From: Octopus bimaculoides | Lineage: Eukaryota | Reading direction: 5' to 3' | Length of the DNA: 36,674 nt | Assembly (NCBI RefSeq): GCF_001194135.2 | Contig: NC_068983.1 | Coordinates: 149,560,600 to 149,597,273, forward strand | In this document: in pieces, positions 5,537 through 34,024 of the stretch | Numbering within the stretch: the stretch's first letter is position 1 | Layout: each line of letters starts with the position of its first letter | Program-made: the position numbers and the translations under genes | The notes under the pieces: generated by a model | What the model saw: only the letters and a program-made list of their open reading frames with translations | Database searches by the model: none | Told to the model about the DNA's origin: nothing

Positions 5537-5574
5537 AACTTAATTCGAGATGGCATTGTTGGAATGGTTGGAAA
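5537..5574 (+). CDS. cys11: Cysteine synthase exon 1 of those identified ([12 protein letters not shown]+AA)
   Basis: ttccag acceptor with a ctaac branch-like motif upstream; gtaagt donor; phase 0 to 2. Confidence 0.85.
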
Positions 5575-8500
5575 GTAAGTACAACAATATTTTACTATTT
5601 TAACAAACACACACACATACACACCCTCTCTCATTCATCATTATCCTAAAGGCCATCATGGATGAGGTTAAGACTGGCCGTCCATGTAAACTCCTATTTC
5701 TGATGATCTAGTTCTCATAACTGAATTTATCAGTGAAAATTCCAGGCTTGGAAGCTAAACCTAGAATAGAGATGTTGAAGATACACTTAATTAAGATAAA
5801 GGTTTTAGTGAGTTGGTAAGAAGACAGAACTGTGGTATCTTCAGGGAAATGGCCTTGCTCAATAGGCAGAAAAGGAGTTGGCAAAAATTCAAACTGTGCA
5901 ACCAAGGACAATAATGATGATGATTCTGAAAATATTATATCTATCATATCCATGTATTAAAAAAATGATAATAATAGTAATACTGAAATTATTATGTATA
6001 ATGCTCAGGTGCACTACAACTTATCAAAGGTGCATGTATAGTACATAGAATTACGGACAAATGTCAGGAAAATGAACAGTGTATGAACCATGATATACAT
6101 TTTTGCATGCATATGGAGGTAGGGATATCAGGTGTAGTGTTGGTGAATTTCAGGTAGCATGGAGGTTTTAAAGGATGCAATATCTCAACAACTAACAATT
6201 GATGCAGGTAGTTTGTTCCATGCTTCAGCAACTCTGAGTGTGAAAAAATGTTTCTGAAAGTCATGGGAGCTGTGCTGTTTTCTGACTGAGTAGGAAAGCC
6301 CATGTGTGTTAGACACATGGAGTTCAAAAATGTGCTCAAGGTGGTTGTTGGTACAAGGATTAATAATGTTGTGGATGTTTACCAAGTCAGTTGCCAGACA
6401 TTGGAGCTTCAATGTATCTATGCCCAGGGAAACAAGGCATTCAGATTATGGTAGATATCTGATGGAGGGTATTCGCTTGGTTGCATGTCTCTGAACAGTT
6501 TCCAGGAGGGAAATTGCAAGATAGGGGTTCCAGACTGTTGATGCAAATTCCAAATATGGCTGCATCATAGCCATATACAGCCTTAAATAGATAGCTGGAG
6601 AGCAGCTACAAGATTTATCTTGTAGGATATGTTTAGTATGGAAAGGCAATGAGCTGGTAGAAACATTAGCATGCCAGGCGAAATGCTTAGCAGTATTTTA
6701 TCTGTCTTTACATTCTGAGTTCAAACTCTGCCAAGGTCGACTTTGCCTTTCATCCTTTCAGGGTTGATAAAATAAGTACTAGTCGATCTAATTGACTGGC
6801 CCACTCCCCCCAAAATTTCGGGCCTTGTGCCTAGAGTAGAAAAGGATTTGTTTAGTATGGAGGTCTGGGTTGGGTGAAATACAGTAGCAATAAAATATTC
6901 ACCAACTCAGTATGGTGATAGGTTAGGAGTGAAAGTTCTCAGTGTTGTTTGTCAATTAGCTGAATTCTTTTTTTCCTCTTGAGTGATGTTTGTGATACTT
7001 GTTAGTATTGTGGAGTCCTTGATTATCTCTGGTCAAGCAGATCTGTTACTAAAAGTGCTCCACCTATGGCCATCTTAACTTTTATTTAAGTACACTGCAT
7101 CTAGGCCTACATTATTCACTGTCCTTGCTTTATTTTAATATGGTGAGGTATGATTTAAAAAAAACTTGGCTGTTATTTCTAGCTGATTGAGAAGCTTCCT
7201 TATTTGCTCATCTCTGATGCTAGTGATCAGAAGAGGGGCATGTTACAAATATAGGAGAAAAACTCCTTAGTGGGAAATATTTAGGATATTTATTATGTAA
7301 TCGTTCTGTATTGATTCAAAGCAATTTTTCTTTCTGTTCCCAGTACGCCTTTGATTAAGCTAAAACAAGTGAGTAAAGAAACAGGTAAGGTATTGAATCT
7401 TCTATCATTATTCAATATTATTGGTATTTGTAATGTTTACTGAATCTCTACTATTGTTGATCTATAAATACTCACTCACTGCTTTTTGATTGCATTCCAG
7501 GTTGTGAGATTCTTGCTAAGGCAGAATTTTGCAATGGAGGTGGTTCTGTTAAAGACAGAGCAGCTTATTACCTAATAAAAGATGCTGAAAAAAAAGGTAT
7601 GTGTATTGATTTATTTCAGAAGTGCAAGATCCAAATTAAAGTTTTAGAGAAAGGAATTTTAAGAGTTGGTTCAGAGAATTTTATGGTACTTACTTTACTG
7701 ACCTTTCTCCAATTCTTCAGAGAGAGATGGAAGATGATCTGAGTAGGATTTGAATATAAGATTGAAAGTGGATTAGAATGTAATCTTACTTCAGACTATT
7801 ATCCTTATCTTCAAATTTGAAATACTTTTAAATATTTACATCTGACACAGTCTCTTATTTTGCTGGCATTATGACAGGAGAGAGAGACAGACTGATAAAG
7901 ATGGTGATAGAGGGAGATTGAATATAGCTAGATCTAGTGCCATCTTTTGTTACATGTGTGTGTATGTATGTATGTATATAAAACTAACATACAAGAGAGA
8001 AGTTAATACAGATGCTGATATGTGATTTCTATAGAAGGCAGCAGCTACATCAAACCATGTCGTGTTTTGAGAATCTTAAGTTGGCTCCATTAAAAAGTTT
8101 CTTGAAATTTTGGGTGATGTGTTATGCTTTAAGCTTTTATGGGAAGAATATATTTCCTCCAAAAGTAACAGTTGCGCAGTGTTTTATAACAGTATACAGA
8201 TTTCCAAACTAGTTGAATACAGAATGCTCCATCTAAAACGTATATCTGAAGCATCATGGAATACATCTGTCTGTGAATGCTTTACATGGCATACTCATTG
8301 AATTCAACTCATTTCAGAAGATAACACACCTCAATTAAGACTAAATATCTTGCTATCAATAGAGTATACAAACATAAACAAGTTGCTGTAACAACATTGC
8401 ACAAAATACTCAAGCTGTGGCACATTGTGTATCAAAGTTATGCATACAGGCCATGGTATATTGTGTATCAAAGTTATGCTATTACTACTATATGGAAGAT

Positions 8501-11350
8501 ATTATAAGTTCCAACACTTTCACAGCTGTACATCAACTTTAGTTCTTGATGAACAGAGCTTCCTGCATGCAGCTATGTGGAACTTATTTCTCACCAGAAA
8601 CATCTCAGCCAACTGCATACAAACTTTGAGAAGTTGAATGTACAAATACCTCTTCTCAGTTTTTCATTTAAAAATGCAGTGAATCAGTGACTAACCCATT
8701 GGACTCCTCTTTGAGTTCAAGTTTCCAATGAGGTTCATTAATGCTTATACTAATTTTTTTTACTGTAGGCACAAGACCTGAAATTTGGAGAGAAGGGACC
8801 AGTTGATTACATTGACACCAGTGCTTAACTGATATTTATTTTATCAACCCAAAAGGATATTAATGATTCTGCTAGCTCACCACCTTAATATAATAATAAT
8901 AATAGATAAGCATTTGTATAACTGTACCTTGGTTAAATAATATATATTTTCATTAATAAAGGACAACTTCAGCCTGGAGGTACAATTGTGGAAGGCACTG
9001 CTGGAAATACTGGAATTGGTCTTGCACACATGTGTCTTTCTCTTGGTTATAAATGTGCAATTTTCATTCCTGATACTCAATCCAAGGTTAGTATAACTTC
9101 TAATTCTTCAGTCTATGTATGTATGAAGTTAACTTAGTCTTTTACAAGTATGAAACTTTTCATTTATAGAGGTACATGAAGTGTTAAGTTCAGGTTTATG
9201 AACACCATAAAATAGGTAAATTTTTAACAGTAGTCTGACTTGGTTTTAATTCCTAACTGAGGTTCTCTCCCCTTCATGTAGATTTTTTTTAAAACTTTCA
9301 CAGAGAACTTGAACATAAGAATTCCCATTTATTAGTTCCTCTAAAAATCTTAAACATCAGATGTGCTTGTATATGTGAACATTGTGTAGGTAATTGTTGC
9401 ATTTATGTTATTTTCAAGATTTCATGCTTACTAATACCAGTCACACTGGATAAATCAGGTAATTCTTCTGTAGAATGATATAATTTTAGTTTTACGTCAG
9501 TTATATGAAATTCATAGAATCATTTTACTGTAAGGTTCTTGTCTACTTTTTCCAGGAAAAGCTTGACATGCTTAAACTTCTTGGTGTGCAGTTATTTCCT
9601 GTTCCTGCTGTACCACTTACTGACCGAAATCACTATAACCAACAGGTGAGATGAAGACATATCTCTCTTCTTCCTGCTTCTTTCTTCTTGAATGGTGAAA
9701 AGAACTGTGTCATCGACCCATTAGTTTAGTTTGGCTGTCTTCACAGACACTTCAGTGATTTCACACAAGCGTGCCATCCATCACTGTCCTCCATGCATGT
9801 TCTTAATTTATCAACATTTGTCATTCCACTGTCCTGAAGCAAGTTGTCCACGTAGACTAGACATTTTCTTCCCTTCTCGATTCTTCCTTCAACTGACTTC
9901 CATAAAACCAATTGACATACAGGTTCTTCTGGATGCCTGATGCAATGACCAGCAGCTCTCATTGTTCTCTGCTGAATCTTCTCAGTCACTCTGGGTAGAT
10001 CTTGATAAAGCTGCTTGTTACTTAAATTAGCTCACCATGTAACATTCAGAACCGTTTTTAACATTATTTTGTAACAACCATCTATTTGTTGGTGAGGATC
10101 CAAGTTTCAGCACCATATAACAAAACTGACTCTACTGTGGAGACAAAACCTAATTTTCAATTGACATGCCATCTTAGAACTCCAGATTTTATGCAGTTTG
10201 TAGCACACACTCCGAGTAAGTGTCATCTGTACAGCAAAATCCTTTCCACTCCTTTTCATCCAAGCACCAAGGTACTTAGTAATTTCCTTAAGTTCTTTTC
10301 TGTTTCTTGCAAAGAGGTAATTTGGTTGCTCATGATCTTGACTGAATGTCTGGTATTCAGTCTTATCTGAATTATAATACAGGTCAACTTTTGCAGCTTC
10401 AAATTCTAGTCTATTGAGCATTTCTTGTACCTGATGTATCTCTTCAGAGATAAAAGCACTATCACCTGCAAAGTCAAGATCTGTAAGTATCTTTGGTGTA
10501 ACTCATCTACTTCTCCATCTCTCCAACTTAAACCTCACTTCCTCCTCTTTTCCTTGTAAGGTATTGTACATTACATAGTCTAGCACCAGAACAAATTGCA
10601 GGAATACGTCATATTAGTGACCTGTGAAAGTCTTTCTTTCCAGACCCAACCAGTAAAGATGAGAAAAATCATACAATTTTGTCTTCTCCTATCATATTCT
10701 TTCTTACAATTTTTAATGAATTCCATATTGTTTCCTGCTGCAGGCACGAAGGTATGCTGAAAGCATAGAGAATGCTGTGTGGACAGACCAGTTTGATAAT
10801 CTAGCAAACCGACTTGCTCATATGGAAACAACTGGACCTGAGATATGGCGAGAAACTAGTGAGTGTATGCTACAATGGAATTATTCACAAACATGTTGCT
10901 TTCAGGCATGCATGCTTGCTTGGTTCAGATTTTAAGAATTTTAGTTGATTGTATTGCACTCACAGGTCACAGTATGCTTGAATATGTATGTATGTAGCAT
11001 CATCATCATATCTGCTTTCCATGCTGGCATAGGTCATCACTGTTTGAGTCATTTGTTGGAAGCCACTACTCCTATAGCCTAGTGCTTGTATGTGTCATTT
11101 GATTTGGTTTCTATGGCTGGTTGTTGTTCCTATTGCTAATCACTTTACAGTGTTCTGAGTGCATTTTCTCATGACACCAATACCTGGGAGTTTGAATAGT
11201 CTTAAGTGAGACAGAGCCATAGGAACCTCACAGCCCCATACTTTCTTTACTCATCTGTTAACCACTTTTCAGAGTGTACAGGGTGCATTTTCCATGGCTC
11301 CAATACTAGAGAGGTTGTCATGCTCTCTACTCTCACCAGAGGGGAATGAT

Positions 11351-11384
<34 letters not shown>

Positions 11385-12491: not shown

Positions 12492-12523
<32 letters not shown>

Positions 12524-15500
12524 GCTAACTACTCTTACCCTTATCTCACTACCCACTCTTATACCATTAGAGTACCCTCTAGCCATTCTTCCTCCCACTA
12601 CTCACCTGCATTCAAACTCTGCTCTTACCTGCAACCTTTATTGTACCCTCTAGTCTCTTTCTTCTTGTTGCTCACATTGCATTTACCCTCTGCCTCATTT
12701 TCTATCACTGCCTTCTTACAACTTCTTTGTCTCCTTAATACCTTCACTCAAACTGCCTTCTCTGGCCTTCACCATTGACCCCAAGCTTTTGAAGACCTCT
12801 GGAATAACCCCACTCTTCTTTTCTGAAAACAAGTAAGGATGACAGGAAGAGATCTACTGTATAATCCTGCCTTAAATAACTCCCTCACCAAACCCATGAT
12901 AGCATGGAAAAATGGACATTAAACAAATAAATAAGCATATATAAAGGAGACACACAACAGTATAAACATTCTAGAAATGCAAAGAACTCACTACATTGAT
13001 ATAGTGTAGTTTACAGATTTATTTGAGACCTATTGAGTTAAGTACACCAACATCAACAGCAATATCAAAATCAAATCAAATTATAGTTGTGAGCCCCGTG
13101 CAGGTAGCACATAAAAGGCACCATCCGAACATAGCCGATGCCAGTGCTGCTTTCACTGGCTTTCATGCCAGTAGCACATAAAAAGCACGAAAAAAGCATC
13201 CACTACATTCTCGGAGTGGTTGGCATTAGGAAGCGCATCCAGCTGCAGAAACATTGCCAGATCAGAATGGGGCCGGTGCAGCCTCCTGGCTTCCCAGACC
13301 CCAGTCGAACTGTCCAACCCATGCCAGCATGGAAAACAGACGTTAAACAATGATGATGAAATTATCTAGATATTGAATATAAGTTTCATGTTTTACTGGT
13401 TTTTATTGAATCCTGATACCAAAGCTCTGGAGACAGTCCTTAGTTTTATGTTACAAACTTCCTATTGTAAAGAGTTCTAAATTAAAACCGACCAATAAAA
13501 TTTTGTACTGAATTGTTACAAGTATAACCTCAGCAATAAGAAAGTTAGGATCTTTTTTAAAACGGGGGCCACATTTTTCATTAACGAAACGCTTTGAAAC
13601 TTGGAACACTGGTAGAATGTGTCATATAAAACATCTTTTTCTCTTAGTGTTCTTTAAAAAAAAAGAAATCCATAAGTTATTCCATGTTAAAGTTGTATTT
13701 CTGTAATTTCAACCAATCACTGACGTCCATTCAGCCGATATACATTAAGTGCCGACTACATAAACAAACGATTCTGAAACAATTAACCCTAACCCTAACT
13801 CTAACCCTAACCCTAGGGTTAGGGTTAAAGCAAACTTAAAATGAAAAAAGCAAATAAAACGAAGGTATGGAGATTAAATACGCTTTACATCGCTTAATCA
13901 GCCAAAGGAGTAAATGTAAACAACTGAATACTTGTCAGTGATTAGTTGAAATTATCGAAATAAGACAACTTTTTACATGAAATAAATTCGAATACAGAAA
14001 TATTTTTCTGTTCTATAACACAAAATAGATAAGTATACGAAGTTTGAAAGTCTTTCCGTACCAAAAACACTACGTAAAACATTAATGAAAAATGTGGCCC
14101 CCGTTTTAAAATAGATCCGAAAGTTATTTTACTAAGTTCTTCATTATTTTCAAAATTAATTGAAACAAAGGCAGTGTATTCAAAAAAAAAAATGATATAA
14201 TGGAAGGGCTAAGCAATCAATGAAATAAATGAAACTATTTCAGATTGCTACATAGAATGATGATAATGATGATAAATTATGACCCTATTAAATTATGAAA
14301 CTTGACAATTTAAAACTTTTAGTTATTAAATGCTGGTGTACAAGGTTAACATCAATCATTTGCATGATAATCTTTTTGATATATGACAACATTTTATTCA
14401 TATTAACTTAGAATGTGGATTAATGTATTTTCCAACTATTCAGTTTTCAGCCATTTAGTGAGTTAAAATATTTGAAAAAAATATTTTGATTTTGGGCTGA
14501 CAAAAAGATATTGACTCTGAAACAATATATTAATTTTGTCTGAGAGACAAGTGAAACTCACAGCCTTTGTTACGTTATTGTAATATAGTCCAAGGTATTT
14601 TGATAAACATATGTATAAAGATTTTCCTGGATTTCTAAAAGAATACTCAAGCTGATTAAATTGTCCTTTAAATTTTATTTCTTCTTAACCCAACTAAAGT
14701 GAATTATTTGTTGTAAGTACTGTGGCACAATAAACTATAGGTTTTGAAAGACTTGAATTGGTTAACTAACAACTGAATGGTAAATAATAAATAAAGACTG
14801 TTGTTTAAGAATTTTACTATTGATGCTTGCTATTTCTGTGGTAAAATTGTGTACAGCTTAAGCTAAAATTAACATTAATTCTATTAAAAATTTTAGAATA
14901 TTTTATATTTTTTAATCATAGATAAAAGTTTTAAAAAAAGTGATTAGCAACACATGTACTTGTATCGACTTTAAAACCAAATGACTTTGTGTTTTATATT
15001 TTTTAAGTGTCTGACAATTATTATTATGTATAACTAATTTTATCTGTAAACCTGCTTCATTTTAATGCTTCATTGTAATAAGGAAATGCTTTGTTGAAGG
15101 AAGATTTATCTGTCAGGTGAGATACTGGATAGCTGTGTTCTAATATTTCTTATGAAATCACTTAGGCCTTTGAAAGATCTGCCTGCTCAATAAACCAATT
15201 TCATTAACTAACAACAAACTCTTTTTCTGTTTCAACTCTCAATGGAAAAATATATGCAACTAAATATTTGTAACTGTGTAATAATACATTTTATGCTGCT
15301 GCTTTTTAAGATTTTTAATACAGCTTAAGGAACTCAAGTACTATCTTTGTGGGGCCCCTAGGGTTCCCAGATGCCAGTATGGGGACACTACAATAGGGGT
15401 TTGAAAACAGTCAAACCTTGTGTAAAAAAAAAAAAAAAGAAGTGAAGGTCAATGATCTCGATAATGGAATATTATTTCTTAATTAACATTAGAAATTAAA

Positions 15501-18500
15501 CATCGTATAGGTGCAAGTGTGGTTGCATATTCGAGAAGTTTGCTTCACTGCCACATGGTTCCAGGTCAACCGAAGCCTTGTAAGTGGGTTTGGTAATTTT
15601 GGTTGATGGGAATTGAAAGAAGCCCATCATGTGCCTGTGTGTGTGTGTATGAAAAAATATCTAGTACATTCTGTAAAGTGGTTGGCATTAGAAAAGGCAT
15701 CCAGCTGCAGAAATCATACTAAAGATGGCATTGGAGCTAACACAGCCCTGCAGTTCACTGGTTCCCTGTCAAATCATCCAACCCATGCGATTATGGAAAG
15801 CAGGTGTTAAATGGTGATGATGGTGTGTGTGTGAGTGTGTGTGAGTGTGACTCACACAATAGTTGTGAAAAGATAGTCACTGTCCTACAAGCAGTGTCAT
15901 TCATTTTCATTCTCCTGCTAAAGCATGTCTGGCCATGAGAAAATAAAACCTTGCTTGGAAACAGGTGAGAGTTGATGACAGGAAGAGCATCCAGCCATAG
16001 AAAATCTGCCTCAATAAAATTCTCTGATCTGTGCAAGCATGGAAAAGTACTCAAAACTTTTGAAATTGGTATTTAGTTGTTATCCTGCTCTGAGTTAAAC
16101 TTCTTCATTTTTACAAAAAATAAATCTTTAATTAGACATCAACCTTGTTACTGTTGTATTAACATTTTTTTACATTGTTTTCTAGAGGGTAGAGTTGATG
16201 CTGTTACATTTGCATCTGGAACTGGTGGGACATTTTCAGGTAATATCTTGCTAAAAATATTTCAATTGCAGTGGTTTTGTTTTTTTAATAACTTACAATT
16301 GTGAGGTTTTGACAATGCATAAAAGACACCTCAACAAGAAACACACTTCTATTTCTTTCCACAATGTGTGCCTGTATGCATAAATCTCTCCCCACCCCAT
16401 ATATGTGTGTGTGACATAATTGCCTGCTGACTCTTCTATTTCAATCCACAATGTGTGCCAGTATTCATAAATACCTTACCACCCACATATGTGTGTGTGT
16501 GTGTGTGTGGCAACTTGCTTGAAGACCCTGTGCATCCACAGACGCAACTCAGAGTGGCAAAAGACTGACTCAACCAAAATAAATCTATTTCTAATCTCTA
16601 CTATTGTGTCGAGTATTCTTTTTCACCTTTTCTCTGATAGTTAACATTAAACAACAGGGATATATATATATATTTATATACATACACACATCTAAATATA
16701 GATGCACACACACACACACACACATTCATTCATGCAAAACAAAGTACAATGGTCATCTGCAAGCAAGTATGACAGTCTAGCAAGTAGCATGCTTTCACTA
16801 GATGTCTATTTAGTTATGAGCGGATACAAATGCTTTCTCCACTCTTATGCTCTTGTCTCAAAGGAACATTGAGGATAAGGCAGTGAGAGGGAGTGAGGGT
16901 TGCACCAGTACTCATCTGATACTCAGTTTCAGCTGAGTAGACTGGAGCAATATGACATGAAATGCATTGCTTAAGAACACAACATGCCACTCAGTCCAGG
17001 AATTGAACTTGTGATCTTAAAACAATAAAGTCAACATCCTAATCACTATGTCACATGCCTTGCACGCGCACACACATACACACACACACCCACACACACA
17101 CACACACGCACACACATACACACACACACTTTTTCTTCTCTTAATCTGAGCCCCTTCAATCTATGTAAGTCATAATCATGTTTATATAAAAGACATGCAT
17201 AAATACACAATCTTATTTCTACCACATAATCTCTCTCTTCAGAGGGACCATCACTGCCACATAATCACACCCCCACTGTTCTCTGACAGAAAGGTTTTGT
17301 GCTTGTGAAAGAACATTATTATATTAGTTAAATGTATGAATATCATACAATCTTATTTTCCTTCTCTTACAAATCTGAGAAATTGTGCCTATGTAAATAA
17401 TTGAATATTTTGATAATTTATTCCCTTGTTCCCAACTCTTCCTATAGGTGTGGGTATGTACCTGAAAGAGAAAAATCCTAATATACAGGCTGTTCTTGCT
17501 GACCCACCTGTAAGTTAATTAAGTTTGCTGAAACTTTTAAATTTGATTTTTCCTTAAAAATGTGATTGTAAGATGTTTTCTTCATGTTCTTTATTTCAAT
17601 AATGTGATTTCTCTCTCTGTGTATATATGTAATTGGTAGAATAGATGCATTCTAGTTGTGGAGCATATCACTGTAGGATTTAGAATTCAAATCATATGGT
17701 CCATTTAAAAAAATTCAAAATAATATATTGTGAGAAATTCAGAAAGTACATTACTATGTGTATTAGGAGTGTTTGGAAATAATACTTTATTTTATATATA
17801 TATACGGACTGGTTAAGCGACACTGGCATCAGCTATGGCTACGGTCTCACTTGACTTGCGGGGTCTTCTCAAGCACAGCGTATCTCCAAAGGCCTCGGTC
17901 ATTCTTGTCATTGCCTCTGTGAGGCCCAACGTTCAAAAGTTGCGCTTCACCATTTCATCCCATGTCTTCCTGAGTCTACCTCTTCTACAGGTTCCCTCCA
18001 CTATTAGGGTGTGAGACTTCTTCACGCAGCGGTCCTCATCCATACGCAACATGACCATACCAACACAGTCGTCTCTCTTGCACACCATATCTGCTGCTTC
18101 TTATGTCCAACTTTTCTCTCGGTGCATACACTCAGTCATGTATGCACACTGACATTACACATCCAGCGGAGCATACTAGCTTCATTCCTTTCTAGCCTAT
18201 GCATGTCCTCAGCAGTCACAGCCCATGTTTCACTGCCATGTAGCATGGCTGATCACAGACATGCATCATACAGTATACCTTTCACTCTGAGAGAGAGGCC
18301 CTTTATTATCAGAAGAGGTAAGAGCTCTCTGAACTTTGCCCAGGCTATTCTTATTCTAGCAGCTATGCTCTCAGAGCATCCGCCCCTGCTACTGACTTGG
18401 TCACTTATGTAATGGTAACTATCAACAACTTCTAGTTTTTTCCCCTGGCATGTAATGGAATCTATTTTCTGTGCATCTTCAATGTTTATTGCACCTGTGC

Positions 18501-21500
18501 ATCTGTCACACACAAAAACTATCTTCCCAGTTAACCTTCCTTTGGTACTGCTGCACCTCTTATGTGTCCGTAACTTACACTGGGTATATCTTATGGAGTT
18601 TCTACTTATACTTTTTCTACAGATTGAGCAGAGCCATCTACCTGAAGGGATTTGTGATTTGTCTACCTTCCTACTTACTAAGACTTTGGTTTTTGCTAGG
18701 TTGACTCTAAGGCCCTTCGATTCTACACCTTGCTTCCACACCTGAAACTTCTGTAGTTCTGGTAGTGACTCAACTATTAGAGCAAGGTTATCAGGATAGA
18801 AGAACTCGCAGTTATTGCCTGGAGGACTACAATGAATAAAAGGAGGCTGAGGACTGATCTTTGGTGAACCCCTACTTCTACCCAGAATTCTTCACTATAC
18901 TCATTGCCAACCCTCACCTTACTGACAGCGTCCCTGTATATGTCTCTCACCAACCACTCATCTATCCCTAGTTTCCGTATTGACCACCAAATAAGGGATC
19001 GAGGGACCCTGTCAAAGGCTTTCTCGTGTCAACAAAAGCCAAGTACAGAGATTTACCTTTGGCTGTGTATTTCTCCTGCAGCTGTCTCACCAGAGATATA
19101 GCATCAGTGGTGCTTCTTCCTGGCACAAACCCAAACTGCATCTTGTCTAAACTAATTCTCTCCCTAATTAGTTGGGCTATGACCCTCTCTGTGACTTTCA
19201 TCACCTGATTCAACAATTTGGTACCTCTGTAATCATTCTTGTCTAATGCATCACCTTTACCTTTGTAGCAGTTGACTATGGTGCTGCTACACCAGTCATT
19301 CGGTATGGCTCCTTTATGTACCACTTGGTTCACTATATAGGTCACTAGACTATAGCCTACACTGCCAGATATTTTAAGCATCTCAGTAGTGATTCCTGAT
19401 GGGCTGGGGGCTCTTCCTATCTTCATGCCCTTAATTGCTTTATCTACCAAGGTACTGTCTATTGGAATAGCTGGTCCCTCTGTTGGATTGACGTTTGGCA
19501 ACTCTCTTTCTCCCATTCATTCTCTCCATTTAGCAATCTTTCATAGTGGCCTCTCCAAGTCTCTCTTTGCAGCATCATTAAATGCAAGTGTGCCATCATC
19601 TATGCAGACATTTCGCTCTTATGGCATCTCTCATATACTGTTTTGCAATACGAAACACTTGAAGTCTCTGGTCCTCACGATGCAGAACATTGGTAAATTT
19701 TTTCTTATCTGCTTCCCCTCTGGCTAAGTAAACCTGTTTCCTAGTTTCCCTTCTGGCGATCTGATACAGTTTCCTGCTATCACCACACTTCAAGTCCTTC
19801 CATGCCTGTTTCTTTTCCCTAATGGCCTTGTCAACTACATTGTTCCACCACCACATTACCTTAGGTTGAGAGGGGACTTTGCACCAGCCATAGATCTGGT
19901 CAGTAGCCCTCAACAGGTTTTCCCATAGGAACCTCCAGTTATCCTCCACATTATGTGATGCTATATCCTCTTTTTTGTCAAAAGCTTCAAGTAATACATC
20001 TCTAAATCTCTGTCCATTCAGAGGATCCTTAAGCTTCCAGACCCTTCTTTTCCATGCTGGTCATCTTCTGGGCAGCCATTTAGCCCTGATCTGGAAGTCA
20101 CTAACTACTAACCTATGTTGTGGGGTGCATTGTTCACCTGGGAAAGTTTTGACGTTTATAAGTAGCCATCTTTCTCATTTCCTGGCGAGAATGTAGTCAA
20201 TCTGACTAGTGTGTCCACCAGACTGGTAAGTGAACAGGTGACTGGCAGGTTTCCTGAAGTTAGTATTATAGATCATAAAATCATTTATATGTATTAAAAA
20301 GGGCATCCAGCTGTAGAAACCATCCCAGAACAAACAATGGAGCCTGGTGCAGCTGGCCTTACTAGTTCTTCTCATCATCCAATCCATGCCAGCTTGGAAA
20401 ATGGATGTTAAATGATGATATATATGTGTGTTTGTGTGTAATTTGTTTATATATCTTCTCTTAGTCAAATAGCAATGTATTTGTCTAAATTTTCAAATAT
20501 GTAATAATGTTGGCAGCTATCATATGAGGTGTTTAGTAACAGAGTGTCATAAGTGCCACCCTGGCCATTTTCGAGGTTAGTATATCATTTTCTTTGTCTC
20601 GATGTCTAGAATCCAAAAAAGTTGAGAGGAAGAACCAGTAAGGCTTGCAATAATATCGAAAATCCAGCTGCAAAAAATTGTACCTCGACACTATTGACAC
20701 AACTCTCGCTCACCCAAACTTGAACCAGAGTGTTTAGTAACACATCATTGTAAGCACACACACTCAATCAATAACTTTGGTGTGGTCCTGTATCATTTTC
20801 CAAGGTGTTATGGCTCATTTTCTAATATTCCTTGTTACCATCATAATGATAATGGATAATAATCTTACTATCTTGTCTTACTTACCCCTTAAAGATACTT
20901 ACCTTGTTATATCAAAATACAAACAATACCTTGGGGTGGGGGGTCTCTGTATGTTTTTTCTAGGTACTATGGCTAAAATGTACAATGCAATGCACTGTTT
21001 CATAGTAACCAGTATATTCTACAAAATGAGAAAGATGCAGTCATTGTTTCATCTTCCAAATACATACATAAATAAATAATTTTACATAGGTGAAATGATT
21101 AGAGGAGGTCTTCAGTCATTTTAAGACCAAAACCAGCTTCCTAACTTCATTCCTCGTCAAGATATCACATTCTGAAAGTCATAAAACTTCCACTGCATCT
21201 TTCTCAGCCTCTAAGTTGTGGTGCTTATGACGGTCTGTTACTAAATGTTACTAAATGCCTCATAAGATCTTGAGATCATAAATTAAATATAATGGTTCTA
21301 TGTTTTTATAGGTAAGTTAGATGATGAGAGTAGTAGTAATAATAATAATAATAATAATAATGAACTTATTGTATATAGTGCTCAGGAGCATTACCACTCA
21401 TTAGAAAAAGTAGCTAAAAAGGCATAGACAGTACATACAGTTAATTCACAGAAAGTGAGAAAATGAGCTGTTTTAAAAAGAATAAAAGTTTGGGTGTGAG

Positions 21501-24500
21501 ACATTAGGTGTACTGGTGAAATTCAGGAAGCATGGAAGTTTTGAAGACTGTAGATAATGCTTTTTAGAAACAAAATTATATTTTCGTTTTTTTTATGGAA
21601 CTTTCATATAACTTTTTGAATGGAAAATTTATTTGGAAATGCTCTTATTTAATTTTCTTTTTAATTAAAATGCTATTAAAATTGCTTTTGCTAGGGCAGT
21701 GTTGTCTACAACTGGTTTAAACATGGCAAGCTTGAGAGAGCAGGTGATGTATCCATCACTGAAGGAATTGGCCAAGGAAGAATAACTGGTAACATGCAAG
21801 GAGCTTTAGTTGATGATGCTTTGTTAGTTTCAGATTCAGAATCTGTGGAAATGGTAAGTTTTTGTAACTAATAAACTTTGTGGAACTTCCTTTAGTCATG
21901 ACTACCATGGATTTCTGCACCTGGTAAGGTCCTCTCCATAGTGTAGATAAGAACAAATTGTTTTTTTTTTAACAGTTGCTCATGCATGCAAGTCTCTATG
22001 CTACTGATGATGTCTCAGGGAAAGGCAAGGCTTGCTTGGTACCACTGTCATTGCAAATGAACCTATCAGAGCATAAGAACCATAAAATGCTGCAAGATGT
22101 GTTGTCTAATGCTTTACCATTTCCAACAATCTTATCACCCTGCATGGGGACTTTTTTATTGACTCTTAAAAAGATGAAAAGTGAAGTTGATCTCAGCAGG
22201 ATTGAACTCAGAGCATAGAGAATCAGAATAAATACTGTGAGGTATCCCGACACCATAAGAACTCTGTTAATTTCCCACCTTTAGTCAATTCTCCCACTCA
22301 AATGGTAATTATTCCAGTCGTGGCCATCCCATTTTTTATTCAGATGTAGTCTAAGAACATATTACCTAATGTGCTCTTTCTTTCTTTTAAGATGTGCAGG
22401 CATGGCTGTGTGGTTGAGAAATTTACTTTCCAGCCTTTTGGTTTCAGGTTCAGTCCCATTAAGTGACACTTTGGGCATCTGTCTTCCACTATATCCTTGT
22501 GAGTAGATTTGGTAGACAGAAACTGAATGAAGCCTGTCGTCTATATGTATGTGTGTACCCTTGTCTTGATATCATGTGATGGTTGTAAACAAGCATCACC
22601 TTCATATAATTGATGTTCATTTCCAGTATGTGAAAAACATGTCTGGCTATAGAGAAATATCACTTTGCTTGGAGGGTTGGTAACTGGATGAGTATTCAGC
22701 TGTAGAAAACCTTCAACAAAATCCATCTGATTAGCATGAGAAATTAAAATGATGACAACAATAATGACAGGGTATTTAATGATGATTTGGCTGATATTTT
22801 TTGTGGGTTATGTAAAGTTTCCCTCATTGGCTAGAATCACAGAGGTTCACAAAACTTCAATGTAACTCTATTTTCTGTAATGAAAAGTAGGTAGTAGATA
22901 AATTCCTCACTAGAGAGTAAGTTAACATATTTCAGTTAATTTTCATGTTACCTGTAAACACCTGGTTATAAGTCTTCCAACTAAAGGAAGTAGAATTAAA
23001 TGTCTGCAGGTGAAAGTTTCATAGTAGGATAGACTTGATGACTTTCGAGATTGTAATCTGTTATCTTGACTATTAATCTGCCATTTCAACCTTGTCTAAT
23101 GCTACTCTGCTCAAACATTAATTGGGTTAGAACTCATAGCATTAGAGTCAATAATTCTGCATTTAATACACAGCCACTGTGATGTCAAGAATGAAAATGG
23201 CACGAGAACTTAGCAGTTGTAAGATTAGGATCCATGACCTCTGATCTCATTTTCATGAATCAAAGTCATGTTTTTCTCTATGATTGTTTCAGTCTCCTTA
23301 GCTGCTAACAGATACAACACCTACTATACAGTTCAGGTAACATAGTTGTTCAGTCTTTGATTTAATTTATGAGATGAAGAATCAATATACCTTGATATAG
23401 TGACACTAGCATCCTCACCCAGATGAAGATGATCTAAATATATCTATGCTTAGTAATAGCTATAAAAAATTTTTTCCAGTAACAATATGCAAATATCTTG
23501 CAATGAAATGTAGAAACACAACAGCAAAAGTGAAAAACATGGATATCTGTCTCCCTATAGTATTTATTATAGCATTTAAATTTTCTGTTAATATAAATTT
23601 TGAAGTTCTAGCAATGGCCGTTGTCAAATTATTAGTAATACTCTTTTACTCGTTTCACTCCTTGAACTACAGCCATTTTGGGACAACACTTTTATTGGGG
23701 ATTTTAGTCAAGTATATCAACCCTAGTATTTAGTTTGGTATTAATTTTATCAAACAGTTTATGTTCTTTTAGTGGATCACTTCCATTCTAAGAACTTACT
23801 ACAATGTATTTTAGATTAGTTTACACTAGTACACTTTCACACACATACATGCATATATGTATAAAAATATATGTACACACACACATACATATACATGTCA
23901 TTTGTAAGGCGGCGAACTGGCAGAAACATTAGCACGCCGGGCGAAATGCTTAGCGGTATTTCGTCTGCCGCTACATTCTGAGTTCAAATTCTACCGAGGT
24001 CGACTTTGCCTTTCATCCTTTCGGGGTCGATCAAATAAGTACCAGTTACGCACTGGGGTCGGTATAATCGACTTAATCCGTTTGTCCCCTCTGTGTGTAG
24101 CCCCTTGTGGGTAGTAAAGAAATAATACATGTCATTTGTTGGCACCAGTGGTGCACCAGCATGACCGCAGCCACTTGGCTGAAACACATAAATAAATAAA
24201 TTAGGAAGGGCATCCAGCCATAGAAACCATGTCAAAGCAAACATTGGAACATGATGTCCTTCAAAGTGTTAAATCCTGTCAAACTGTCCAACCCATGCCA
24301 GCATGAAAGGCAGACATTAAAAGTTGATGATTCATTCTTTCTTTGTTTTTCCATACTAGAATGGTTAAGCAAATATGTATATTCTGAGTTTAGTTTGACT
24401 GACTCTGTCCTTTTCTATGAAGTTGTAACTTTGTGTCTTTGTAAGAAATTGTAAAACAAGAAAACTGATTATAGAAAAAGTATGAGATCTTATTTCCATT

Positions 24501-27500
24501 TTATGGCCATTATTCCATATTGATATGTGCAGAAAAACAGAGAAACATCTGCAATATAGCTGGAAAACTTGAGGGAAGATTAAGGAATATTTAAGGTTAA
24601 TGGGGAAACTCAACAGGTAGAACTTTATTTTTAATATACCATTTTATCTTTGATCTCTTTGTCACTGTTGTTTATTTCCCCATTAAAGGTCTTTCGACTC
24701 TTAGGAGAGGAAGGTTTCTTTGTGGGTGCATCTTCAGGGCTTAATGTCGCTGCAGCTGTTCGTGTGGCAAAATCTTTAGGACCAGGACATACAGTGGTAA
24801 CTTGTCTTTGTGATACTGGCCAGGTATGTTATTTTTTTTATTTTTTTATTTTAATATTATGTATTCAGAGATAAGACACTTGATAATGACTGGAGATCAA
24901 ACTGAACAAAATGTATAAATGTAAATATCAAATGTTTCATCTTTAACGATGGAACATTTTTCTTGAAATCTAAAAATGATAATCATATTAACAATAACTT
25001 AGATATTTTAATACTTTCAGAAGAATCAGCAACAGAATGTTTTTTGTGGCACTAGTAATAGAAAGATAACCATATCCTTGCCATATCTAGAGGGACATAG
25101 TTTATTCATAAATGTGAATAAACCTTGAAGTATGAAAAACAAAATCTTTAAGTCTCATCTAGCATGCTTATATCACATCTGTCATGATGTAATTTTACCA
25201 TGTTATTTTTGAAAACATAACACTCAAACACATATAAGAAAGCATCAGTCTTGTACCATTCTGCAAATTAACTTTTGCTAAATAATATACTTATTTATAT
25301 ATTTGTAGGGAAGTGGTTATACACCATTAGGTGTACACTGCTTCCGGACATTAAATTTCTAGAAGAAACAACGGAATGCAGATTCTGAACAACATAACAA
25401 TATTTATTTTACAGTGGAATTCAGTCCACGCTTGGAAGGAATTCGGTAGCTCGTCGCCCTCGGTTATTGAGACGCCTTCTGAATGATTTCCGTGGTTATT
25501 TGTGAAGCTCTGGTGCTGACATGTGAGAGAGCTCTGTTGGACGTCTTGGCTCGACGGAGATCAGTCAACGAAGAGATTGAGAAAAGGCGCCAAAGCTGGG
25601 TGTCGAACTCTACGCATGTGCATGAGACTCTTCCTGTATTCCTTCCGGAACTAGTCCCTGCGCATGCGTGGATAAAACTCCGGACATTGAACATATAACA
25701 GTCGTCTGCTATAAGGTGTCACTACATATTAATAAATAACCTTCAATTACTCTCAGTAATAGTTTGATAAGGAAAGGTAAATGCATCCATATGAAGTGTT
25801 AAATAACAATAAAACCATTCAGTTCAATTCTTCATCCAAAGTAGAAAAACCTAAATTTCCCAGAAAATTTAACAGGTATGGATATGAGCCCACTTCATCA
25901 TTTTTATGTTTGCTTTCCATGCTTATATGGGTAGGGCAGATTATCACAGTCTGAGATGGTTCTTATTCAGAAATATTTCTCTCTTCGATGGTTGGAGGAT
26001 CATGTCTTGCTATGTTCCATGACTTTTATATTGCTTTGTTTCATATTTCAGAGGTATTACAACAAGTTGTTCAGTGAAACAGAATTGAAAAAGAGAGGTA
26101 AAGGATTTCTATTTGCTTAGCGTGTTATTTTATTTACTCTTTCTCTCTGTAAAGTTGTTTTTAGTTATCAATCTACCCATAAGTAGTAGACAGATAATTG
26201 GAAAATAGTTTTATTGTGTGTAGTATAGGTAGTATTTGACAAATATGTTAAAGTTAATTAAACTGAGCAAATTTCTAAGATTAATTATGACTTTCATCTC
26301 TTAGCATGATGTAGTATATTATCTGTGTATAAACATAGTCTGGCTGTAAAGGTTATTTGGGTTTGAAATTGAAGTTTGTGTGAAAACATAAATAGGAAAC
26401 ACTCTCTGAGTGGTTGGCGTTAGGAAGGGCATCCAGCTGTAGAAACTCTGCCAAATCAGATTGGAGCCTGGTGTTGCCATCCGGTTTCACCAGTCCTCAG
26501 TCAAATCGTCCAACCCATGCTAGCATGGAAAGCGGACGTTAAACGATGATGATGATGATTATAAGTATTTCAAGTTCTCTTAGTTGCTTTTCAAGCACTT
26601 TGAGATTATAATGGCCCTTAATCTGCTTTGGAATTTTTTTAACCCTTTAGTGTTCAGCTTAGTCTCTCAAATAAAATGCTTATTTATTCACATTGTTTTT
26701 AATTAATCATTTATTTTCTTGTACCTTCAAGATTTCGATCATATGATTGTTTATTTTTAGAAAGACATTGTAAGGGAGGAGTTATAAGCCAAATCTGGCT
26801 TGTTCCAGAACAGGTAGAATATTTGGGTCACATGTGGTTGGTTTAAATGCTAAAAATTGTTAATGTTTGCATCATGCACGAAAACATGGTCAAGTAATTA
26901 ATAAGTTTGCTTTACAATCATATCTTTTAGGTATGACACCCTACATGGTGTCTTCAGCAAATTTCTTTTATGATAACCTTTGATTGACCTAAGCCTTATG
27001 AAAGAAAATGAATTAATGGAAGCTGTGAGGAAGTCCATTGGATAGATTATGTCATGCTTATTTCAGATGAGAATTACGTTAGGAGTGCATGTGTCTGAGG
27101 AATACTTGGCCTTCCACGGAAATTTAATGAGCGAATAGTCTAGAGTTGATCAAACAATTGAAAGCTCATCATCAAAACATACAGATAATCTATCAATGTG
27201 TGTGTGATATATGGCAGAATTGTAGTATTTAATTACAACTCTTTACATTCAGATTTTAAATTCCACTAAAGTTGACTGTGCCTTTCATCACTCTAGGTTT
27301 CATAAAAATAAGTACTGATATTGTACTAAGATCAGTTCACTTGATTATAATCTTCCCCTGGCAAATTTGTGTGTCTTTATGTCAATTCTTTCCATGTGAA
27401 ATGGATGTTGATATGATGATAATTGGTCTTTCACTTTTTAGGATAAAATTTGAGTTAGGTTAACAAGCTTCTGACTACAGATCAAGTACGACTAGTTTGT

Positions 27501-27910
27501 TTCTTGACATTCTTTCTGGATTGTCATTTTAACTCTTTAAGATTTCTATCCATTGTGAAAACAAAAATAGCTCTAGGTATAGTAATTTTGGTTTATCCGA
27601 AAATAGTACTTCAGAGAGATTCTCTGGATTTTGGTTTGTCTGAAATATTCTTCTTTACCTAGCTGTATCTTGTAATTTACTGTGTGCTAATTTAATGAGC
27701 TTTCACCTACAGAAAGAGGTCAAGACTTTTGTCAAGAAGTAAACTTGTACTGTGGATAGAAGGGTGTTAACTTAATTGGTTTCATTATTAAGTATGCTGT
27801 TCTGACAACATCTCTATATTTGACATGTTTATTTCATTATCATTTTAGGATTGTACGAAGCTGTGCCAGAACAATATCGTAGTTTCCTTCACACACCATT
27901 GGAAAACTGA
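5537..27910 (+). CDS. cys11: Cysteine synthase (O-acyl-serine sulfhydrylase), fungal Cys11/Cys1a-like; 12 coding exons, 340 aa, N-terminal exon not identified
   Basis: Exons joined at GT-AG sites keep phase and total 1023 nt ending in TGA: [19 protein letters not shown]...[17 protein letters not shown] (PLP Lys)...[10 protein letters not shown]...TDQFDNLAN...[10 protein letters not shown]...SGTGGT...ADPPGS...[10 protein letters not shown]...[11 protein letters not shown]...[12 protein letters not shown]...PLEN*. Motif set matches the fungal/alphaproteobacterial cysteine synthase clade as I recall it. No CBS domains. Confidence 0.93.
5645..5905 (+). mobile_element. RTE LINE internal fragment (same family as 17805-20291)
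   Basis: Degenerate ...DDLVLI...IKVLVS...[15 protein letters not shown], aligns to ORF 18253-18741. Confidence 0.7.
5975..6650 (-). mobile_element. CR1-clade LINE 3' portion
   Basis: [20 protein letters not shown]...[14 protein letters not shown] and [11 protein letters not shown]...[21 protein letters not shown]. Confidence 0.85.
6650..6845 (+). mobile_element. tRNA-type SINE with central ctttgcctttcatcctttc.gggt.gataaaataagtac domain (Meta-domain-like); best copy 23905-24125, remnants near 4975-5060, 8770-8860, 22050-22260, 34790-34900
   Basis: B-box-like gagttcaaa followed by a conserved core shared among copies. Confidence 0.7.
7344..7384 (+). CDS. cys11: Cysteine synthase exon 2 ((N)[13 protein letters not shown])
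   Basis: cccag / gtaagg; completes the GNTPL motif. Confidence 0.92.
7501..7596 (+). CDS. cys11: Cysteine synthase exon 3 ([32 protein letters not shown]), contains the PLP lysine
   Basis: ttccag / gtatgt; SVKDR motif. Confidence 0.95.
8962..9086 (+). CDS. cys11: Cysteine synthase exon 4 ([42 protein letters not shown])
   Basis: taaag / gttagt; substrate loop TAGNTG. Confidence 0.95.
9556..9645 (+). CDS. cys11: Cysteine synthase exon 5 ([30 protein letters not shown])
   Basis: ttccag / gtgaga; 30 codons, phase 0. Confidence 0.93.
9700..10560 (-). mobile_element. Second RTE-clade LINE family, RT C-terminal fragment
   Basis: LTDLDFAGD (degenerate FADD), [27 protein letters not shown]...[13 protein letters not shown]. 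Confidence 0.85.
10744..10858 (+). CDS. cys11: Cysteine synthase exon 6 ([38 protein letters not shown])
   Basis: ctgcag / gtgagt; QFDN and TTGPEIW motifs. Confidence 0.95.
11000..11320 (-). mobile_element. Two degenerate RTE-tail repeats
   Basis: catcatcatcatatctgctttccatgctggcat...; aaccacttttcagagtgtacagggtgc. Confidence 0.6.
11390..12440 (-). mobile_element. Penelope-like element fragment (GIY-YIG endonuclease C-terminus, low-complexity linker, 3' repeat)
   Basis: [19 protein letters not shown]...[38 protein letters not shown]...LNSRN is the typical PLE GIY-YIG pattern. Confidence 0.8.
11462..11521 (-). ncRNA. Degenerate minimal type I hammerhead ribozyme in the PLE 3' repeat
   Basis: Minus strand: GAGT-CTGATGA-GT-CATCTATA/TATAGGTG-TAAA(A)-CCAATGG-TC-ACTC; the CGAAA core reads TAAAA. 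Confidence 0.55.
13090..13360 (+). mobile_element. RTE 3' UTR/tail repeat, longer copy
   Basis: atagccgatgccagtg...gtggttggcattaggaagcgcatccagc...aacccatgccagcatggaaaacagacgttaaacaatgatgatg. Confidence 0.8.
13548..14118. mobile_element. Non-autonomous DNA transposon (MITE), 571 bp, GG-starting TIR (MULE- or Merlin-like), central telomeric palindrome
   Basis: 37-bp TIR with 1 mismatch (GGATCTTTTTTAAAACGGGGGCCACATTTTTCATTAA); 8-bp TSD GAAAGTTA (13540-13547, 14119-14126); second internal inverted repeat of about 45 bp. Confidence 0.9.
15510..16050 (+). mobile_element. Cluster of SINE and RTE-tail fragments; similar SINE at about 22395-22750
   Basis: tRNA-like head, (TG)n, tail aacccatgcgattatggaaagcaggtgttaaatggtgatgat. 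Confidence 0.55.
16186..16239 (+). CDS. cys11: Cysteine synthase exon 7 ([18 protein letters not shown])
   Basis: ttctag / gtaata; phosphate-binding GTGGT. Confidence 0.93.
16515..16560 (+). ncRNA. Second degenerate hammerhead-like motif (PLE repeat remnant)
   Basis: TTGC-TTGAAGA-CC-CTGTG/CACAG-AC-GCA-ACTCAGAGT-G-GCAA; three core mismatches, palindromic stem III. Confidence 0.35.
16760..17065 (-). mobile_element. tRNA-derived SINE followed by a (CA)n microsatellite (17065-17130)
   Basis: Minus strand A-box-like TGACATAGTGATTAG and B-box-like GTTCAATTCC. Confidence 0.65.
17448..17509 (+). CDS. cys11: Cysteine synthase exon 8 ([21 protein letters not shown])
   Basis: ctatag / gtaagt. Confidence 0.93.
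17805..20420 (-). mobile_element. RTE-clade LINE, 2.5 kb degenerate body (endonuclease end, RT, PHD finger, C-terminus) on -, with its 3' tail on + (20293-20420)
   Basis: [30 protein letters not shown]; [33 protein letters not shown]; [12 protein letters not shown]; frameshifts and stops. Confidence 0.92.
20525..21262. mobile_element. Old TIR element with TA flanks (Tc1/mariner-like, non-autonomous)
   Basis: 35-bp TIR, 29/35 identical after removing a 10-bp duplication in the right copy; TA at 20523-24 and 21263-64. Confidence 0.55.
21345..21560 (-). mobile_element. CR1 LINE extreme 3' end with (TAT)n tail
   Basis: Homologous to 1140-1335: gtgcacctgagcactatatacaataag. Confidence 0.75.
21695..21853 (+). 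CDS. cys11: Cysteine synthase exon 9 ([53 protein letters not shown])
   Basis: gctag / gtaagt; EGIGQG motif. Confidence 0.95.
23905..24330 (+). mobile_element. Well-preserved tRNA-type SINE (23905-24125) followed by an RTE-tail repeat (24205-24330)
   Basis: CpG-retaining ggcggcgaactggcagaaac...gagttcaaattc...ctttgcctttcatcctttcggggtcgat. Confidence 0.8.
24689..24823 (+). CDS. cys11: Cysteine synthase exon 10 ([45 protein letters not shown])
   Basis: ttaaag / gtatgt; lies within ORF 24650-24874. Confidence 0.95.
25304..25726 (-). mobile_element. Solo LTR (probably Gypsy), 423 bp
   Basis: TGTAG...CTACA termini; 4-bp TSD TATT (25300-03, 25727-30); minus-strand AATAAA at 25408-25403; CpG-rich. 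Confidence 0.8.
26052..26097 (+). CDS. cys11: Cysteine synthase exon 11 ([15 protein letters not shown])
   Basis: tttcag / gtaaag; continues the D-x-G-x-R-Y motif. Confidence 0.9.
26400..26559 (+). mobile_element. Young RTE-tail repeat with (GAT)n
   Basis: 1 mismatch in 134 nt versus 29119-29273. Confidence 0.9.
26643..26859. mobile_element. piggyBac-type MITE, degenerate right end
   Basis: TTAA|CCCTTTAG left end; right end ...gctaaaaattg|TTAA (decayed CTAAAGGG). Confidence 0.5.
27849..27910 (+). CDS. cys11: Cysteine synthase terminal coding exon ([20 protein letters not shown]); AATAAA candidates near 28139 and 28357
   Basis: ttttag acceptor, phase 1 matches exon 11, TGA at 27908-27910. 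Confidence 0.85.
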
Positions 27911-29118: not shown

Positions 29119-29273
29119 TGGTTGGCGTTAGGAAGGGCATCCAGCTGTAGAAACTCTGCCAAATCAGACTGGAGCCTGGTGTTGCCATCCGGTTTCACCA
29201 GTCCTCAGTCAAATCGTCCAACCCATGCTAGCATGGAAAGCGGACGTTAAACGATGATGATGATGATGATGAT
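29119..29273 (+). mobile_element. Young RTE-tail repeat with (GAT)n
   Basis: Near-identical to 26411-26559. Confidence 0.9.
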
Positions 29274-31345: not shown

Positions 31346-31534
31346 TCACTCTTTAGAAGTATCTGATGGGTTTTCCTCCGAAATAGTAATATCTGGGATA
31401 ATGTTTTCATCTCCTCTGAGAATGGCAATTTCTTCAATAGGAATTTGAATTCGCATCTCTTTCTCCAGCATTAGGTCTACAATATCCTGCAGTTTACTAT
31501 CTCCAAGCATAGTAATGGCATCTTTGTAAAGGGC
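31346..31534 (-). CDS. NRDE2: NRDE2 terminal coding exon (ALYKDA...DTSKE*); minus-strand AATAAA candidates near 30980 and 30805
   Basis: gttgcag acceptor; TGA at 31348-31346. Confidence 0.9.
   Translation of the reverse strand, partial: ALYKDAITMLGDSKLQDIVDLMLEKEMRIQIPIEEIAILRGDENIIPDITISEENPSDTSKE

Positions 31535-33960: not shown

Positions 33961-34024
<64 letters not shown>

Follow-up and report, generated by a model that had tools for sequence, protein, structure and literature searches.

The O-succinylserine route to cysteine, in which Cys2 acts first and Cys1a second, has been described in animals: Cys1a and Cys2 of the coral A. loripes rescue the corresponding S. pombe cys1a and cys2 mutants, and the genes for both steps are reported from every animal phylum, with vertebrates, arthropods and nematodes as the only exceptions (Salazar et al., 2022, Sci Adv; PMC9506716). 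Here we describe a gene of this kind in Octopus bimaculoides, LOC106876675, which lies on the plus strand at positions 2528-27910 of a 36,674-nucleotide stretch of contig NC_068983.1 (the window; all coordinates are positions in it). A first-pass annotation made from the letters alone had guessed that the DNA was probably cephalopod, and the window is indeed identical to sequence of chromosome CM046603.1 in assembly GCA_001194135.2. The same annotation had proposed that the stretch encodes a sulfhydrylase of the O-succinylserine route, adding that animals were already known to have this route, as is borne out by the published data, which list this very accession (PMC9506716). Those of its proposed checks that could be made here, on phylogeny, partner gene and intron positions, all favour that reading.

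The 367-aa product is an exact match to XP_014780795.1 / UniProt A0A0L8GIK4 ("Cysteine synthase 1"), a gene labelled "cysteine synthase 1(-like)" in RefSeq and UniProt. Data S3 of the 2022 study give A0A0L8GIK4 as an O. bimaculoides Cys1a of 367 residues, with the sequence that we obtain here, and the IQ-TREE analysis published with it classes the accession as Cys1a (PMC9506716). The octopus Cys1a gene is therefore already annotated and already placed in the 2022 literature, and the present work is a correct re-discovery: its main value is confirmatory, it carries little weight as a discovery, and its additions are modest, namely the first exon, a comparison of intron positions, an estimate of selection, a candidate octopus Cys2 and a hint of a presequence. 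The result lends support to the earlier proposal of an ancestral pathway that disappeared from the lineages leading to the main model organisms (PMC9506716), and a clean gene model that includes the first exon, together with a candidate partner gene, can be used in work on cysteine and sulfide metabolism in cephalopods.

The octopus gene, its family and its candidate partner

Once spliced, the gene yields an intact open reading frame (ORF) of 367 codons plus TGA (1104 nt) from 13 coding exons and 12 introns, and the annotated gene span, 25,383 bp, is the same as that of our splice model. Judging from its signatures and from its place among its relatives, we put at about 0.85 the probability that it is the O. 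bimaculoides orthologue of Cys1a (S. pombe Cys11/Cys1a; A. loripes Acys1a), the second-step enzyme of the O-succinylserine route. Pfam detects a single PALP domain (PF00291, aa 37-329, E 2e-72) in the protein. The best NCBIfam model is that of the bacterial PRK10717-type cysteine synthase A (NF007989), which scores 461.4 bits against a cut-off of 387 and aligns over model positions 4-329 of 334. The top matches in the PDB are 5i7w, 5jis and 5jjc (E ~1e-105 to 1e-107), of which 5JIS is the Brucella abortus O-acetylserine sulfhydrylase (OASS) that served as search model for the A. fumigatus enzyme, AfuCys1a (bioRxiv 10.64898/2026.06.04.730285). The bacterial proteins of this type thus supply both the best model and the best structure (1e-107, 52.5% identity); unlike the octopus gene and its product, they have neither introns nor an N-terminal extension.

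The substrate and cofactor loops point the same way. Cys1a proteins combine TAGNT with GTGGT, whereas CysK, CysM and cystathionine beta-synthase (CBS) carry TSGNT and CysM carries GTTGT (bioRxiv 10.64898/2026.06.04.730285); the octopus protein, with TAGNTG and GTGGT, fits the Cys1a signature. The spliced product contains all four motifs named by the first-pass annotation, SVKDR at aa 69-73, TAGNTG at 98-103, GTGGT at 207-211 and GIGQG at 258-262, and the peptide blocks that it had singled out fall within stop-free stretches of the plus strand. Specificity in AfuCys1a has been proposed to depend on Thr127, Gln128, Ser259, Thr261, Glu262 and Gln266-Gly267 (bioRxiv 10.64898/2026.06.04.730285), and the octopus equivalents T124, Q125, S254, T256, E257, Q261 and G262 are all present, the correspondence having been drawn from motif offsets and not from the AfuCys1a sequence itself. 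S. pombe Cys1a/Cys11 (O59701) and A. fumigatus Cys1a have TAGNT, GTGGT, TQ and the S-x-TE substrate-loop residues in common with the octopus protein, whose gene is set apart from theirs by its 12 introns.

A neighbour-joining (NJ) tree of 29 sequences (324 columns, 100 bootstraps) was built from the references of data S3 of PMC9506716 and animal orthologues taken from a protein search, with the nematode CYSL sequences left out. In it the octopus protein groups with other holozoan sequences, and this clade is the sister of fungal Cys1a, the opisthokont Cys1a clade as a whole receiving 93% bootstrap; bacterial 5i7w is the next branch outside (Cys1a plus 5i7w, 100%), followed by the Cys1a-like proteins. 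Deep nodes within the animal clade have bootstraps of 1-32%, which are meaningless, and nothing is drawn from them. Sequence identity ranges from 59.6% with S. pombe Cys1a and 52.5% with the Brucella-type bacterial enzyme to 42-45% with algal "Cys1a-like" proteins, 36-38% with CBS (catalytic cores), 35-38% with CysK and 35-36% with CysM. A rough concatenation of the peptide blocks, searched against proteins, retrieved octopus, argonaut and cuttlefish matches at E 1e-149 to 1e-170, along with orthologues at ~60-70% identity in bivalves, gastropods, annelids, hemichordates, amphioxus, tunicates, echinoderms, cnidarians, sponges, Trichoplax, Capsaspora and a chytrid; with orthologue matches at E 1e-170, a chance match is not an issue. 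The first-pass annotation called the enzyme fungal-type, a label that is historical only: members of the family are found throughout the opisthokonts, in other eukaryotes and in bacteria, and since the animal sequences form a sister group to the fungal ones and are not nested among them, "fungal-type" is a naming convention and not a statement of origin.

The first step of the route also appears to be represented. The octopus is not in the MetX sheet of the PMC9506716 data; a search for a Cys2-type acyltransferase, using oyster Cys2 (K1Q6X7) as query, returned from the same genome O. bimaculoides LOC106867363 (P0177, 464 aa) at 61% identity, 94% coverage and E 3e-156, as well as an Argonauta "serine O-succinyltransferase-like" protein. 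LOC106867363 is located on another contig (97.8 Mb) than Cys1a. Its identity is 59% with A. loripes Cys2, 50% with S. pombe Cys2 and 38% with a MetX-G2 enzyme, and it has all four serine succinyltransferase elements defined in PMC9506716 (GLSA, Ser-Leu, Arg and Asp). O. bimaculoides thus encodes a candidate serine O-succinyltransferase of the Cys2 type (MetX-G3c). The nearest validated case is that of the coral: A. loripes Acys1a belongs to the same orthologous group, has the same single-domain architecture, and like the octopus gene contains introns and is accompanied by a Cys2 partner, and Acropora millepora Cys1a is 66.7% identical to the octopus protein over 324 aligned columns. The coral pair has been validated by yeast complementation, whereas the octopus pair is known from sequence alone.

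If the octopus proteins behave as their orthologues do, Cys2 would transfer succinate from succinyl-CoA to L-serine, giving O-succinyl-L-serine. Cys1a, a fold-type II pyridoxal phosphate (PLP) enzyme predicted to hold PLP on Lys71, would then eliminate succinate from this intermediate to form aminoacrylate, and sulfide or a related reactive sulfur species would add to the aminoacrylate to yield L-cysteine. Both steps may take place in mitochondria, as suggested by the basic, acid-free N-termini of the two octopus proteins.

Cysteine supply, sulfide handling and a possible mitochondrial setting

Whether the enzyme serves mainly to supply cysteine is the question on which the main live rival turns. 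This alternative, which we regard as possible but doubtful, holds that the Cys1a-family protein of the octopus mainly handles sulfide or reactive sulfur, through H2S detoxification, mitochondrial use of persulfide or release of H2S from cysteine, while bulk cysteine comes from the diet and from CBS/CGL transsulfuration. It is in fact suggested by the gene complement: data S3 also contain an O. bimaculoides CBS (A0A0L8H496, 547 aa; PMC9506716), so that the animal may have no need of Cys1a to supply its cysteine. In this the octopus differs from the coral, which has no CBS and would for that reason depend on the Cys2/Cys1a route; an animal with a listed CBS gene still retains the two genes of the alternative route, under strong constraint and with an exon-intron organisation older than the bilaterian-cnidarian split. 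AfuCys1a likewise lends itself to such a role, being predicted to reside in the mitochondrial matrix and tolerating a broad range of sulfur donors, and a proposal cited with it has reactive sulfur derived from sulfide:quinone oxidoreductase (SQR) feeding S. pombe Cys1a (bioRxiv 10.64898/2026.06.04.730285).

Several further points weigh against the assignment that we favour. AfuCys1a was assayed with O-acetylserine, its use of sulfur donors is argued to be permissive, and its authors count the physiological substrates among the things still to be identified (bioRxiv 10.64898/2026.06.04.730285). Metazoans are without the enzymes of sulfate assimilation (PMC9506716), and since no sulfate reduction is known in animals, the net role of the pathway could be sulfide handling and not de novo supply of cysteine. 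The idea of mitochondrial targeting comes only from composition and a hydrophobic-moment calculation. Finally, no O. bimaculoides transcript contig with the exact protein was found in the searchable collections, which returned genome records only.

Against sulfide handling as the main function stands the Cys2 partner, kept in the same genome with its serine succinyltransferase signatures: a retained Cys2 makes sense only if O-succinylserine is made and used, which leads to cysteine. The coral orthologue pair, moreover, restores cysteine prototrophy in yeast (PMC9506716). Because detoxification and biosynthesis are one and the same chemical reaction, the sulfide-handling alternative differs from assignment to the O-succinylserine route in emphasis and not in mechanism, and a sulfide-fixing or detoxifying role, which we infer from the orthologues, would be compatible with a Cys1a identity.

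The N-terminus of the octopus protein bears on both readings, for it resembles a mitochondrial presequence. AfuCys1a is predicted to be mitochondrial (matrix) and to have an N-terminal presequence (bioRxiv 10.64898/2026.06.04.730285). In the octopus protein, the first 30 residues contain four Arg/Lys and no Asp/Glu, with an amphipathic stretch, SHITRLLRQTF, whose hydrophobic moment is 0.72; in ~100 animal orthologues the corresponding extension measures 31 aa at the median and includes 5 basic residues and 1 acidic residue, and the N-terminus of octopus Cys2 is similar in style, basic and free of acidic residues. Succinyl-CoA, the acyl donor, is a mitochondrial metabolite. Together, the basic N-termini of Cys1a and Cys2, the prediction for AfuCys1a and the location of succinyl-CoA make a matrix location of octopus Cys1a plausible. 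We tentatively go one step further and hypothesize that Cys2 and Cys1a are imported into mitochondria in the octopus and probably in most non-vertebrate animals, where succinyl-CoA from the tricarboxylic acid cycle and serine would be coupled to the capture, as cysteine, of sulfide or of persulfide derived from SQR. The pair would then form a matrix sulfide sink parallel to SQR and might have been kept beside cytosolic CBS for that reason. The strings "mitochondri" and "localiz" are absent from the main text of PMC9506716, which does not discuss where the animal proteins reside or how old their genes are at the level of introns.

Other PALP enzymes and the descent of the gene

Two other identities within the PALP fold have to be weighed. 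Less probable by far than sulfide handling is that the octopus protein is a CysK-type O-acetylserine sulfhydrylase, a beta-cyanoalanine synthase or a non-catalytic CYSL-like sulfide sensor. The PALP fold and the SVKDR lysine are common to all these proteins, CysK and CysM (plant OASTL and nematode CYSL included) share beta-replacement chemistry and the PLP lysine motif with the octopus protein, the cysK model does score 255 bits, and AfuCys1a turns over O-acetylserine in vitro (bioRxiv 10.64898/2026.06.04.730285). The scores nevertheless fall below the curated cut-offs for cysK (TIGR01139, 254.6 bits vs 351) as well as for cysM (TIGR01138 / NF008735, 208 / 213 bits vs 394 / 413), identity to CysK is well below the 60% reached with S. 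pombe Cys1a, and the loop reads TAGNT and not TSGNT. The partner proteins also differ, CysK and CysM being paired with a CysE-type SAT and Cys1a with the MetX-type Cys2. Nematode CYSL proteins, for their part, resemble plant CysK (PMC9506716 supplementary text), a clade other than that of the octopus protein. We reject membership in the CysK, CysM, CysO or algal Cys1a-like groups because of the curated cut-offs, the loop signatures and the position in the NJ tree, where the octopus protein falls outside each of these groups.

More improbable still is a truncated or diverged CBS of transsulfuration. CBS entries are the second group of PDB matches (~1e-65 to 1e-60), the CBS model TIGR01137 aligns over aa 30-352, and human and Drosophila CBS share with the octopus protein the fold-type II PLP core and GTGGT. 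This model, however, gives 291.7 bits where its cut-off is 510; a Pfam search of the complete 367-aa protein finds no CBS domain, hence no C-terminal CBS pair; the catalytic core is preceded by 36 aa only, too short for the haem-binding extension of CBS; and the asparagine loop is TAGNT where CBS has TSGNT. The first-pass annotation had remarked on the lack of haem extension and CBS domains in the part it recovered, and the observation extends to the complete protein. At 36-38% identity the protein lies outside the CBS clade (100% bootstrap), and the octopus has the separate CBS listed in PMC9506716. A CBS identity is thus rejected by domain content and phylogeny.

The Cys1a gene very probably came down vertically from the opisthokont ancestor, and evidence on its descent comes from its introns. 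These were compared by mapping the exact orthologous protein onto DNA at each genomic locus, an intron being counted as shared when it falls in the same alignment column and in the same phase. All 12 octopus introns are common to O. vulgaris and to the mussel Mytilus coruscus. Branchiostoma floridae has 11 of the 12, with the twelfth one column off in the poorly aligned N-terminus; Nematostella has 9, plus the same one-column-off near-match; Capsaspora has 3 of the 12; and none of the 3 introns of Trichoplax is common with the octopus. The positions held in common with mussel, amphioxus and sea anemone, together with intronic repeats and a decayed reverse transcriptase, support the old vertical inheritance that the first-pass annotation had argued for, and provide strong evidence, from gene structure, of vertical descent since before the cnidarian-bilaterian split. 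Some old introns seem to have been lost since. A phase-0 intron at alignment column 186 is found in Nematostella, Capsaspora and Trichoplax and in none of the bilaterians examined, and another, at column 325, in Nematostella and amphioxus and not in molluscs, a pattern that looks like lineage-specific loss in both cases. The mussel orthologue spans ~66 kb, with one intron of 31 kb and one of 12.7 kb; the full mussel protein is also encoded on two contigs of less than 2 kb, presumably transcripts.

Coding sequence has been conserved along with structure. Compared with O. vulgaris there are 29 nucleotide and 6 amino-acid differences (dN/dS 0.077), the value against O. sinensis is 0.081, and these ratios show, at the level of substitutions, that the gene is under purifying selection. 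Exons are 97.4% identical to those of O. vulgaris and introns 90.9%, the latter over the 79% of intron sequence that aligns. In a decapodiform cephalopod, a Logan contig of 1205 nt (SRR27666068) encodes without interruption an orthologue of 329 aa that has 91% identity with the cuttlefish protein, which shows that a spliced mRNA of the orthologue exists in cephalopods. The octopus gene is real and almost certainly working. That it might instead be a bacterial or fungal contaminant, a recent horizontal acquisition or a dead pseudogene could be suspected from its bacterial nearest structures and from the first characterisation of the family in fungi, but this is the least credible of the alternatives and is excluded by the chromosomal context (a 168-Mb chromosome, between the animal genes PI31, upstream and outside the window, and NRDE-2), by 12 spliceosomal introns at conserved positions that hold short interspersed element (SINE)-like repeats also present in the flanking DNA, and by an intact ORF with dN/dS of 0.08 and orthologues of the same structure in O. 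vulgaris and O. sinensis.

Exons, repeats and neighbouring sequence

The window has an AT-rich, eukaryotic composition (GC 32-44%). A tblastn search with the O. vulgaris orthologue gave 13 blocks, whose junctions were then refined by script and visual inspection; 12/12 introns start at a GT donor and end at an AG acceptor with its polypyrimidine tract, and the phases are consistent. The first-pass annotation had reported a 340-aa ORF over 12 exons. This corresponds exactly to exons 2-13 (367 - 27 = 340), 5537 being the first base of exon 2 and 27910 the end of the stop codon, but exon 1 had been missed: it lies at 2528-2608, outside the 5537-27910 interval then considered, and brings the coding introns to 12, all GT-AG, in place of the eleven reported.

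Exon 1 encodes 27 aa, MNQSHITRLLRQTFITTYLQHRKSSSQ, from an ATG at 2528, and is supported by the tblastn match, the splice model and an upstream in-frame stop. Two short exons follow, exon 2 (5537-5574, 38 nt), an exon with an intron position common to mussel, amphioxus and Nematostella, and exon 3 (7344-7384, 41 nt), each supported by tblastn, by the splice model and by the intron comparison. Intron 3 (7385-7500) measures just 116 nt and has the identical length in O. vulgaris; the remaining introns are 0.5-5.3 kb long and differ in length between the two species. In the splice model with mapped motifs, exon 4 (7501-7596) carries SVKDR at 7545-7559, with the codon of the PLP-binding lysine K71 at 7551-7553, and exon 5 (8962-9086) carries the asparagine loop TAGNTG, in its Cys1a-type Ala variant, at 8997-9014 and T124/Q125 at 9075-9080, the meaning of these motifs being taken from bioRxiv 10.64898/2026.06.04.730285. 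Exons 6 (9556-9645) and 7 (10744-10858) were placed by tblastn and the splice model, as was exon 9 (17448-17509). The PLP-phosphate loop GTGGT is at 16218-16232 in exon 8 (16186-16239), and the second substrate loop, SITEGIGQG, at 21752-21778 in exon 10 (21695-21853), both by splice model and motif mapping. Exon 11 (24689-24823) contains GASSG (24725-24739), whose serine contacts the PLP pyridine nitrogen in this fold. Exon 12 (26052-26097, 46 nt) follows from the splice model, and exon 13 (27849-27910), found by tblastn and the splice model, ends in the TGA stop at 27908-27910. All 13 exons are on the plus strand.

Read-through of the intron 12 donor (26098-26124) leads to a stop, and the C-terminus so produced is that of an annotated 354-aa O. 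vulgaris isoform, CAI9719567.1 (P0122). Given this same C-terminus, the two octopuses may have conserved a retained-intron isoform that lacks the final 19 residues.

The introns had been described as filled with host repeats. Interspersed repeats and a decayed reverse transcriptase are indeed present, but repeats recognisable within the window cover only ~2.7 of the 24.3 kb of intron, a lower bound, and no exon base lies in a repeat. The most frequent is a SINE-like family of ~150 bp, with at least 9 copies in both orientations in introns and intergenic flanks, among them those at 680-844, 1779-1924, 13205-13359, 15643-15825, 20299-20419, 24201-24331, 26399-26562 and 29119-29271. Three of these (680-844, inverted, 26399-26562 and 29119-29271) are 97-99% identical to one another, which suggests recent activity of the family; ARAGORN and Rfam (gathering threshold), run on the window, gave no tRNA or RNA-family match for it. 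Intron 9 holds decayed fragments of a non-LTR (long terminal repeat) retrotransposon ORF on the minus strand (18253-19949), with a weak RVT_1 match (E 4e-6) at 18968-19516; this is host mobile DNA and not a part of the enzyme, and an inverted relative, 79% identical, occupies 36425-36674 at the window end.

Downstream, a minus-strand homologue of NRDE-2 converges on the cysteine synthase gene; its 3' part occupies ~31346 to 36674, and the gene continues past the window end. Pfam gave no match for the single-exon ORFs of this gene; it is identified by a precomputed annotation that covers it in full, with a 1256-aa product and PF08424. Dinucleotide microsatellites are found at 108-147, (AT)21; at 17069-17129 in intron 8, (CA)30; and at 33962-34026, (TA)32.

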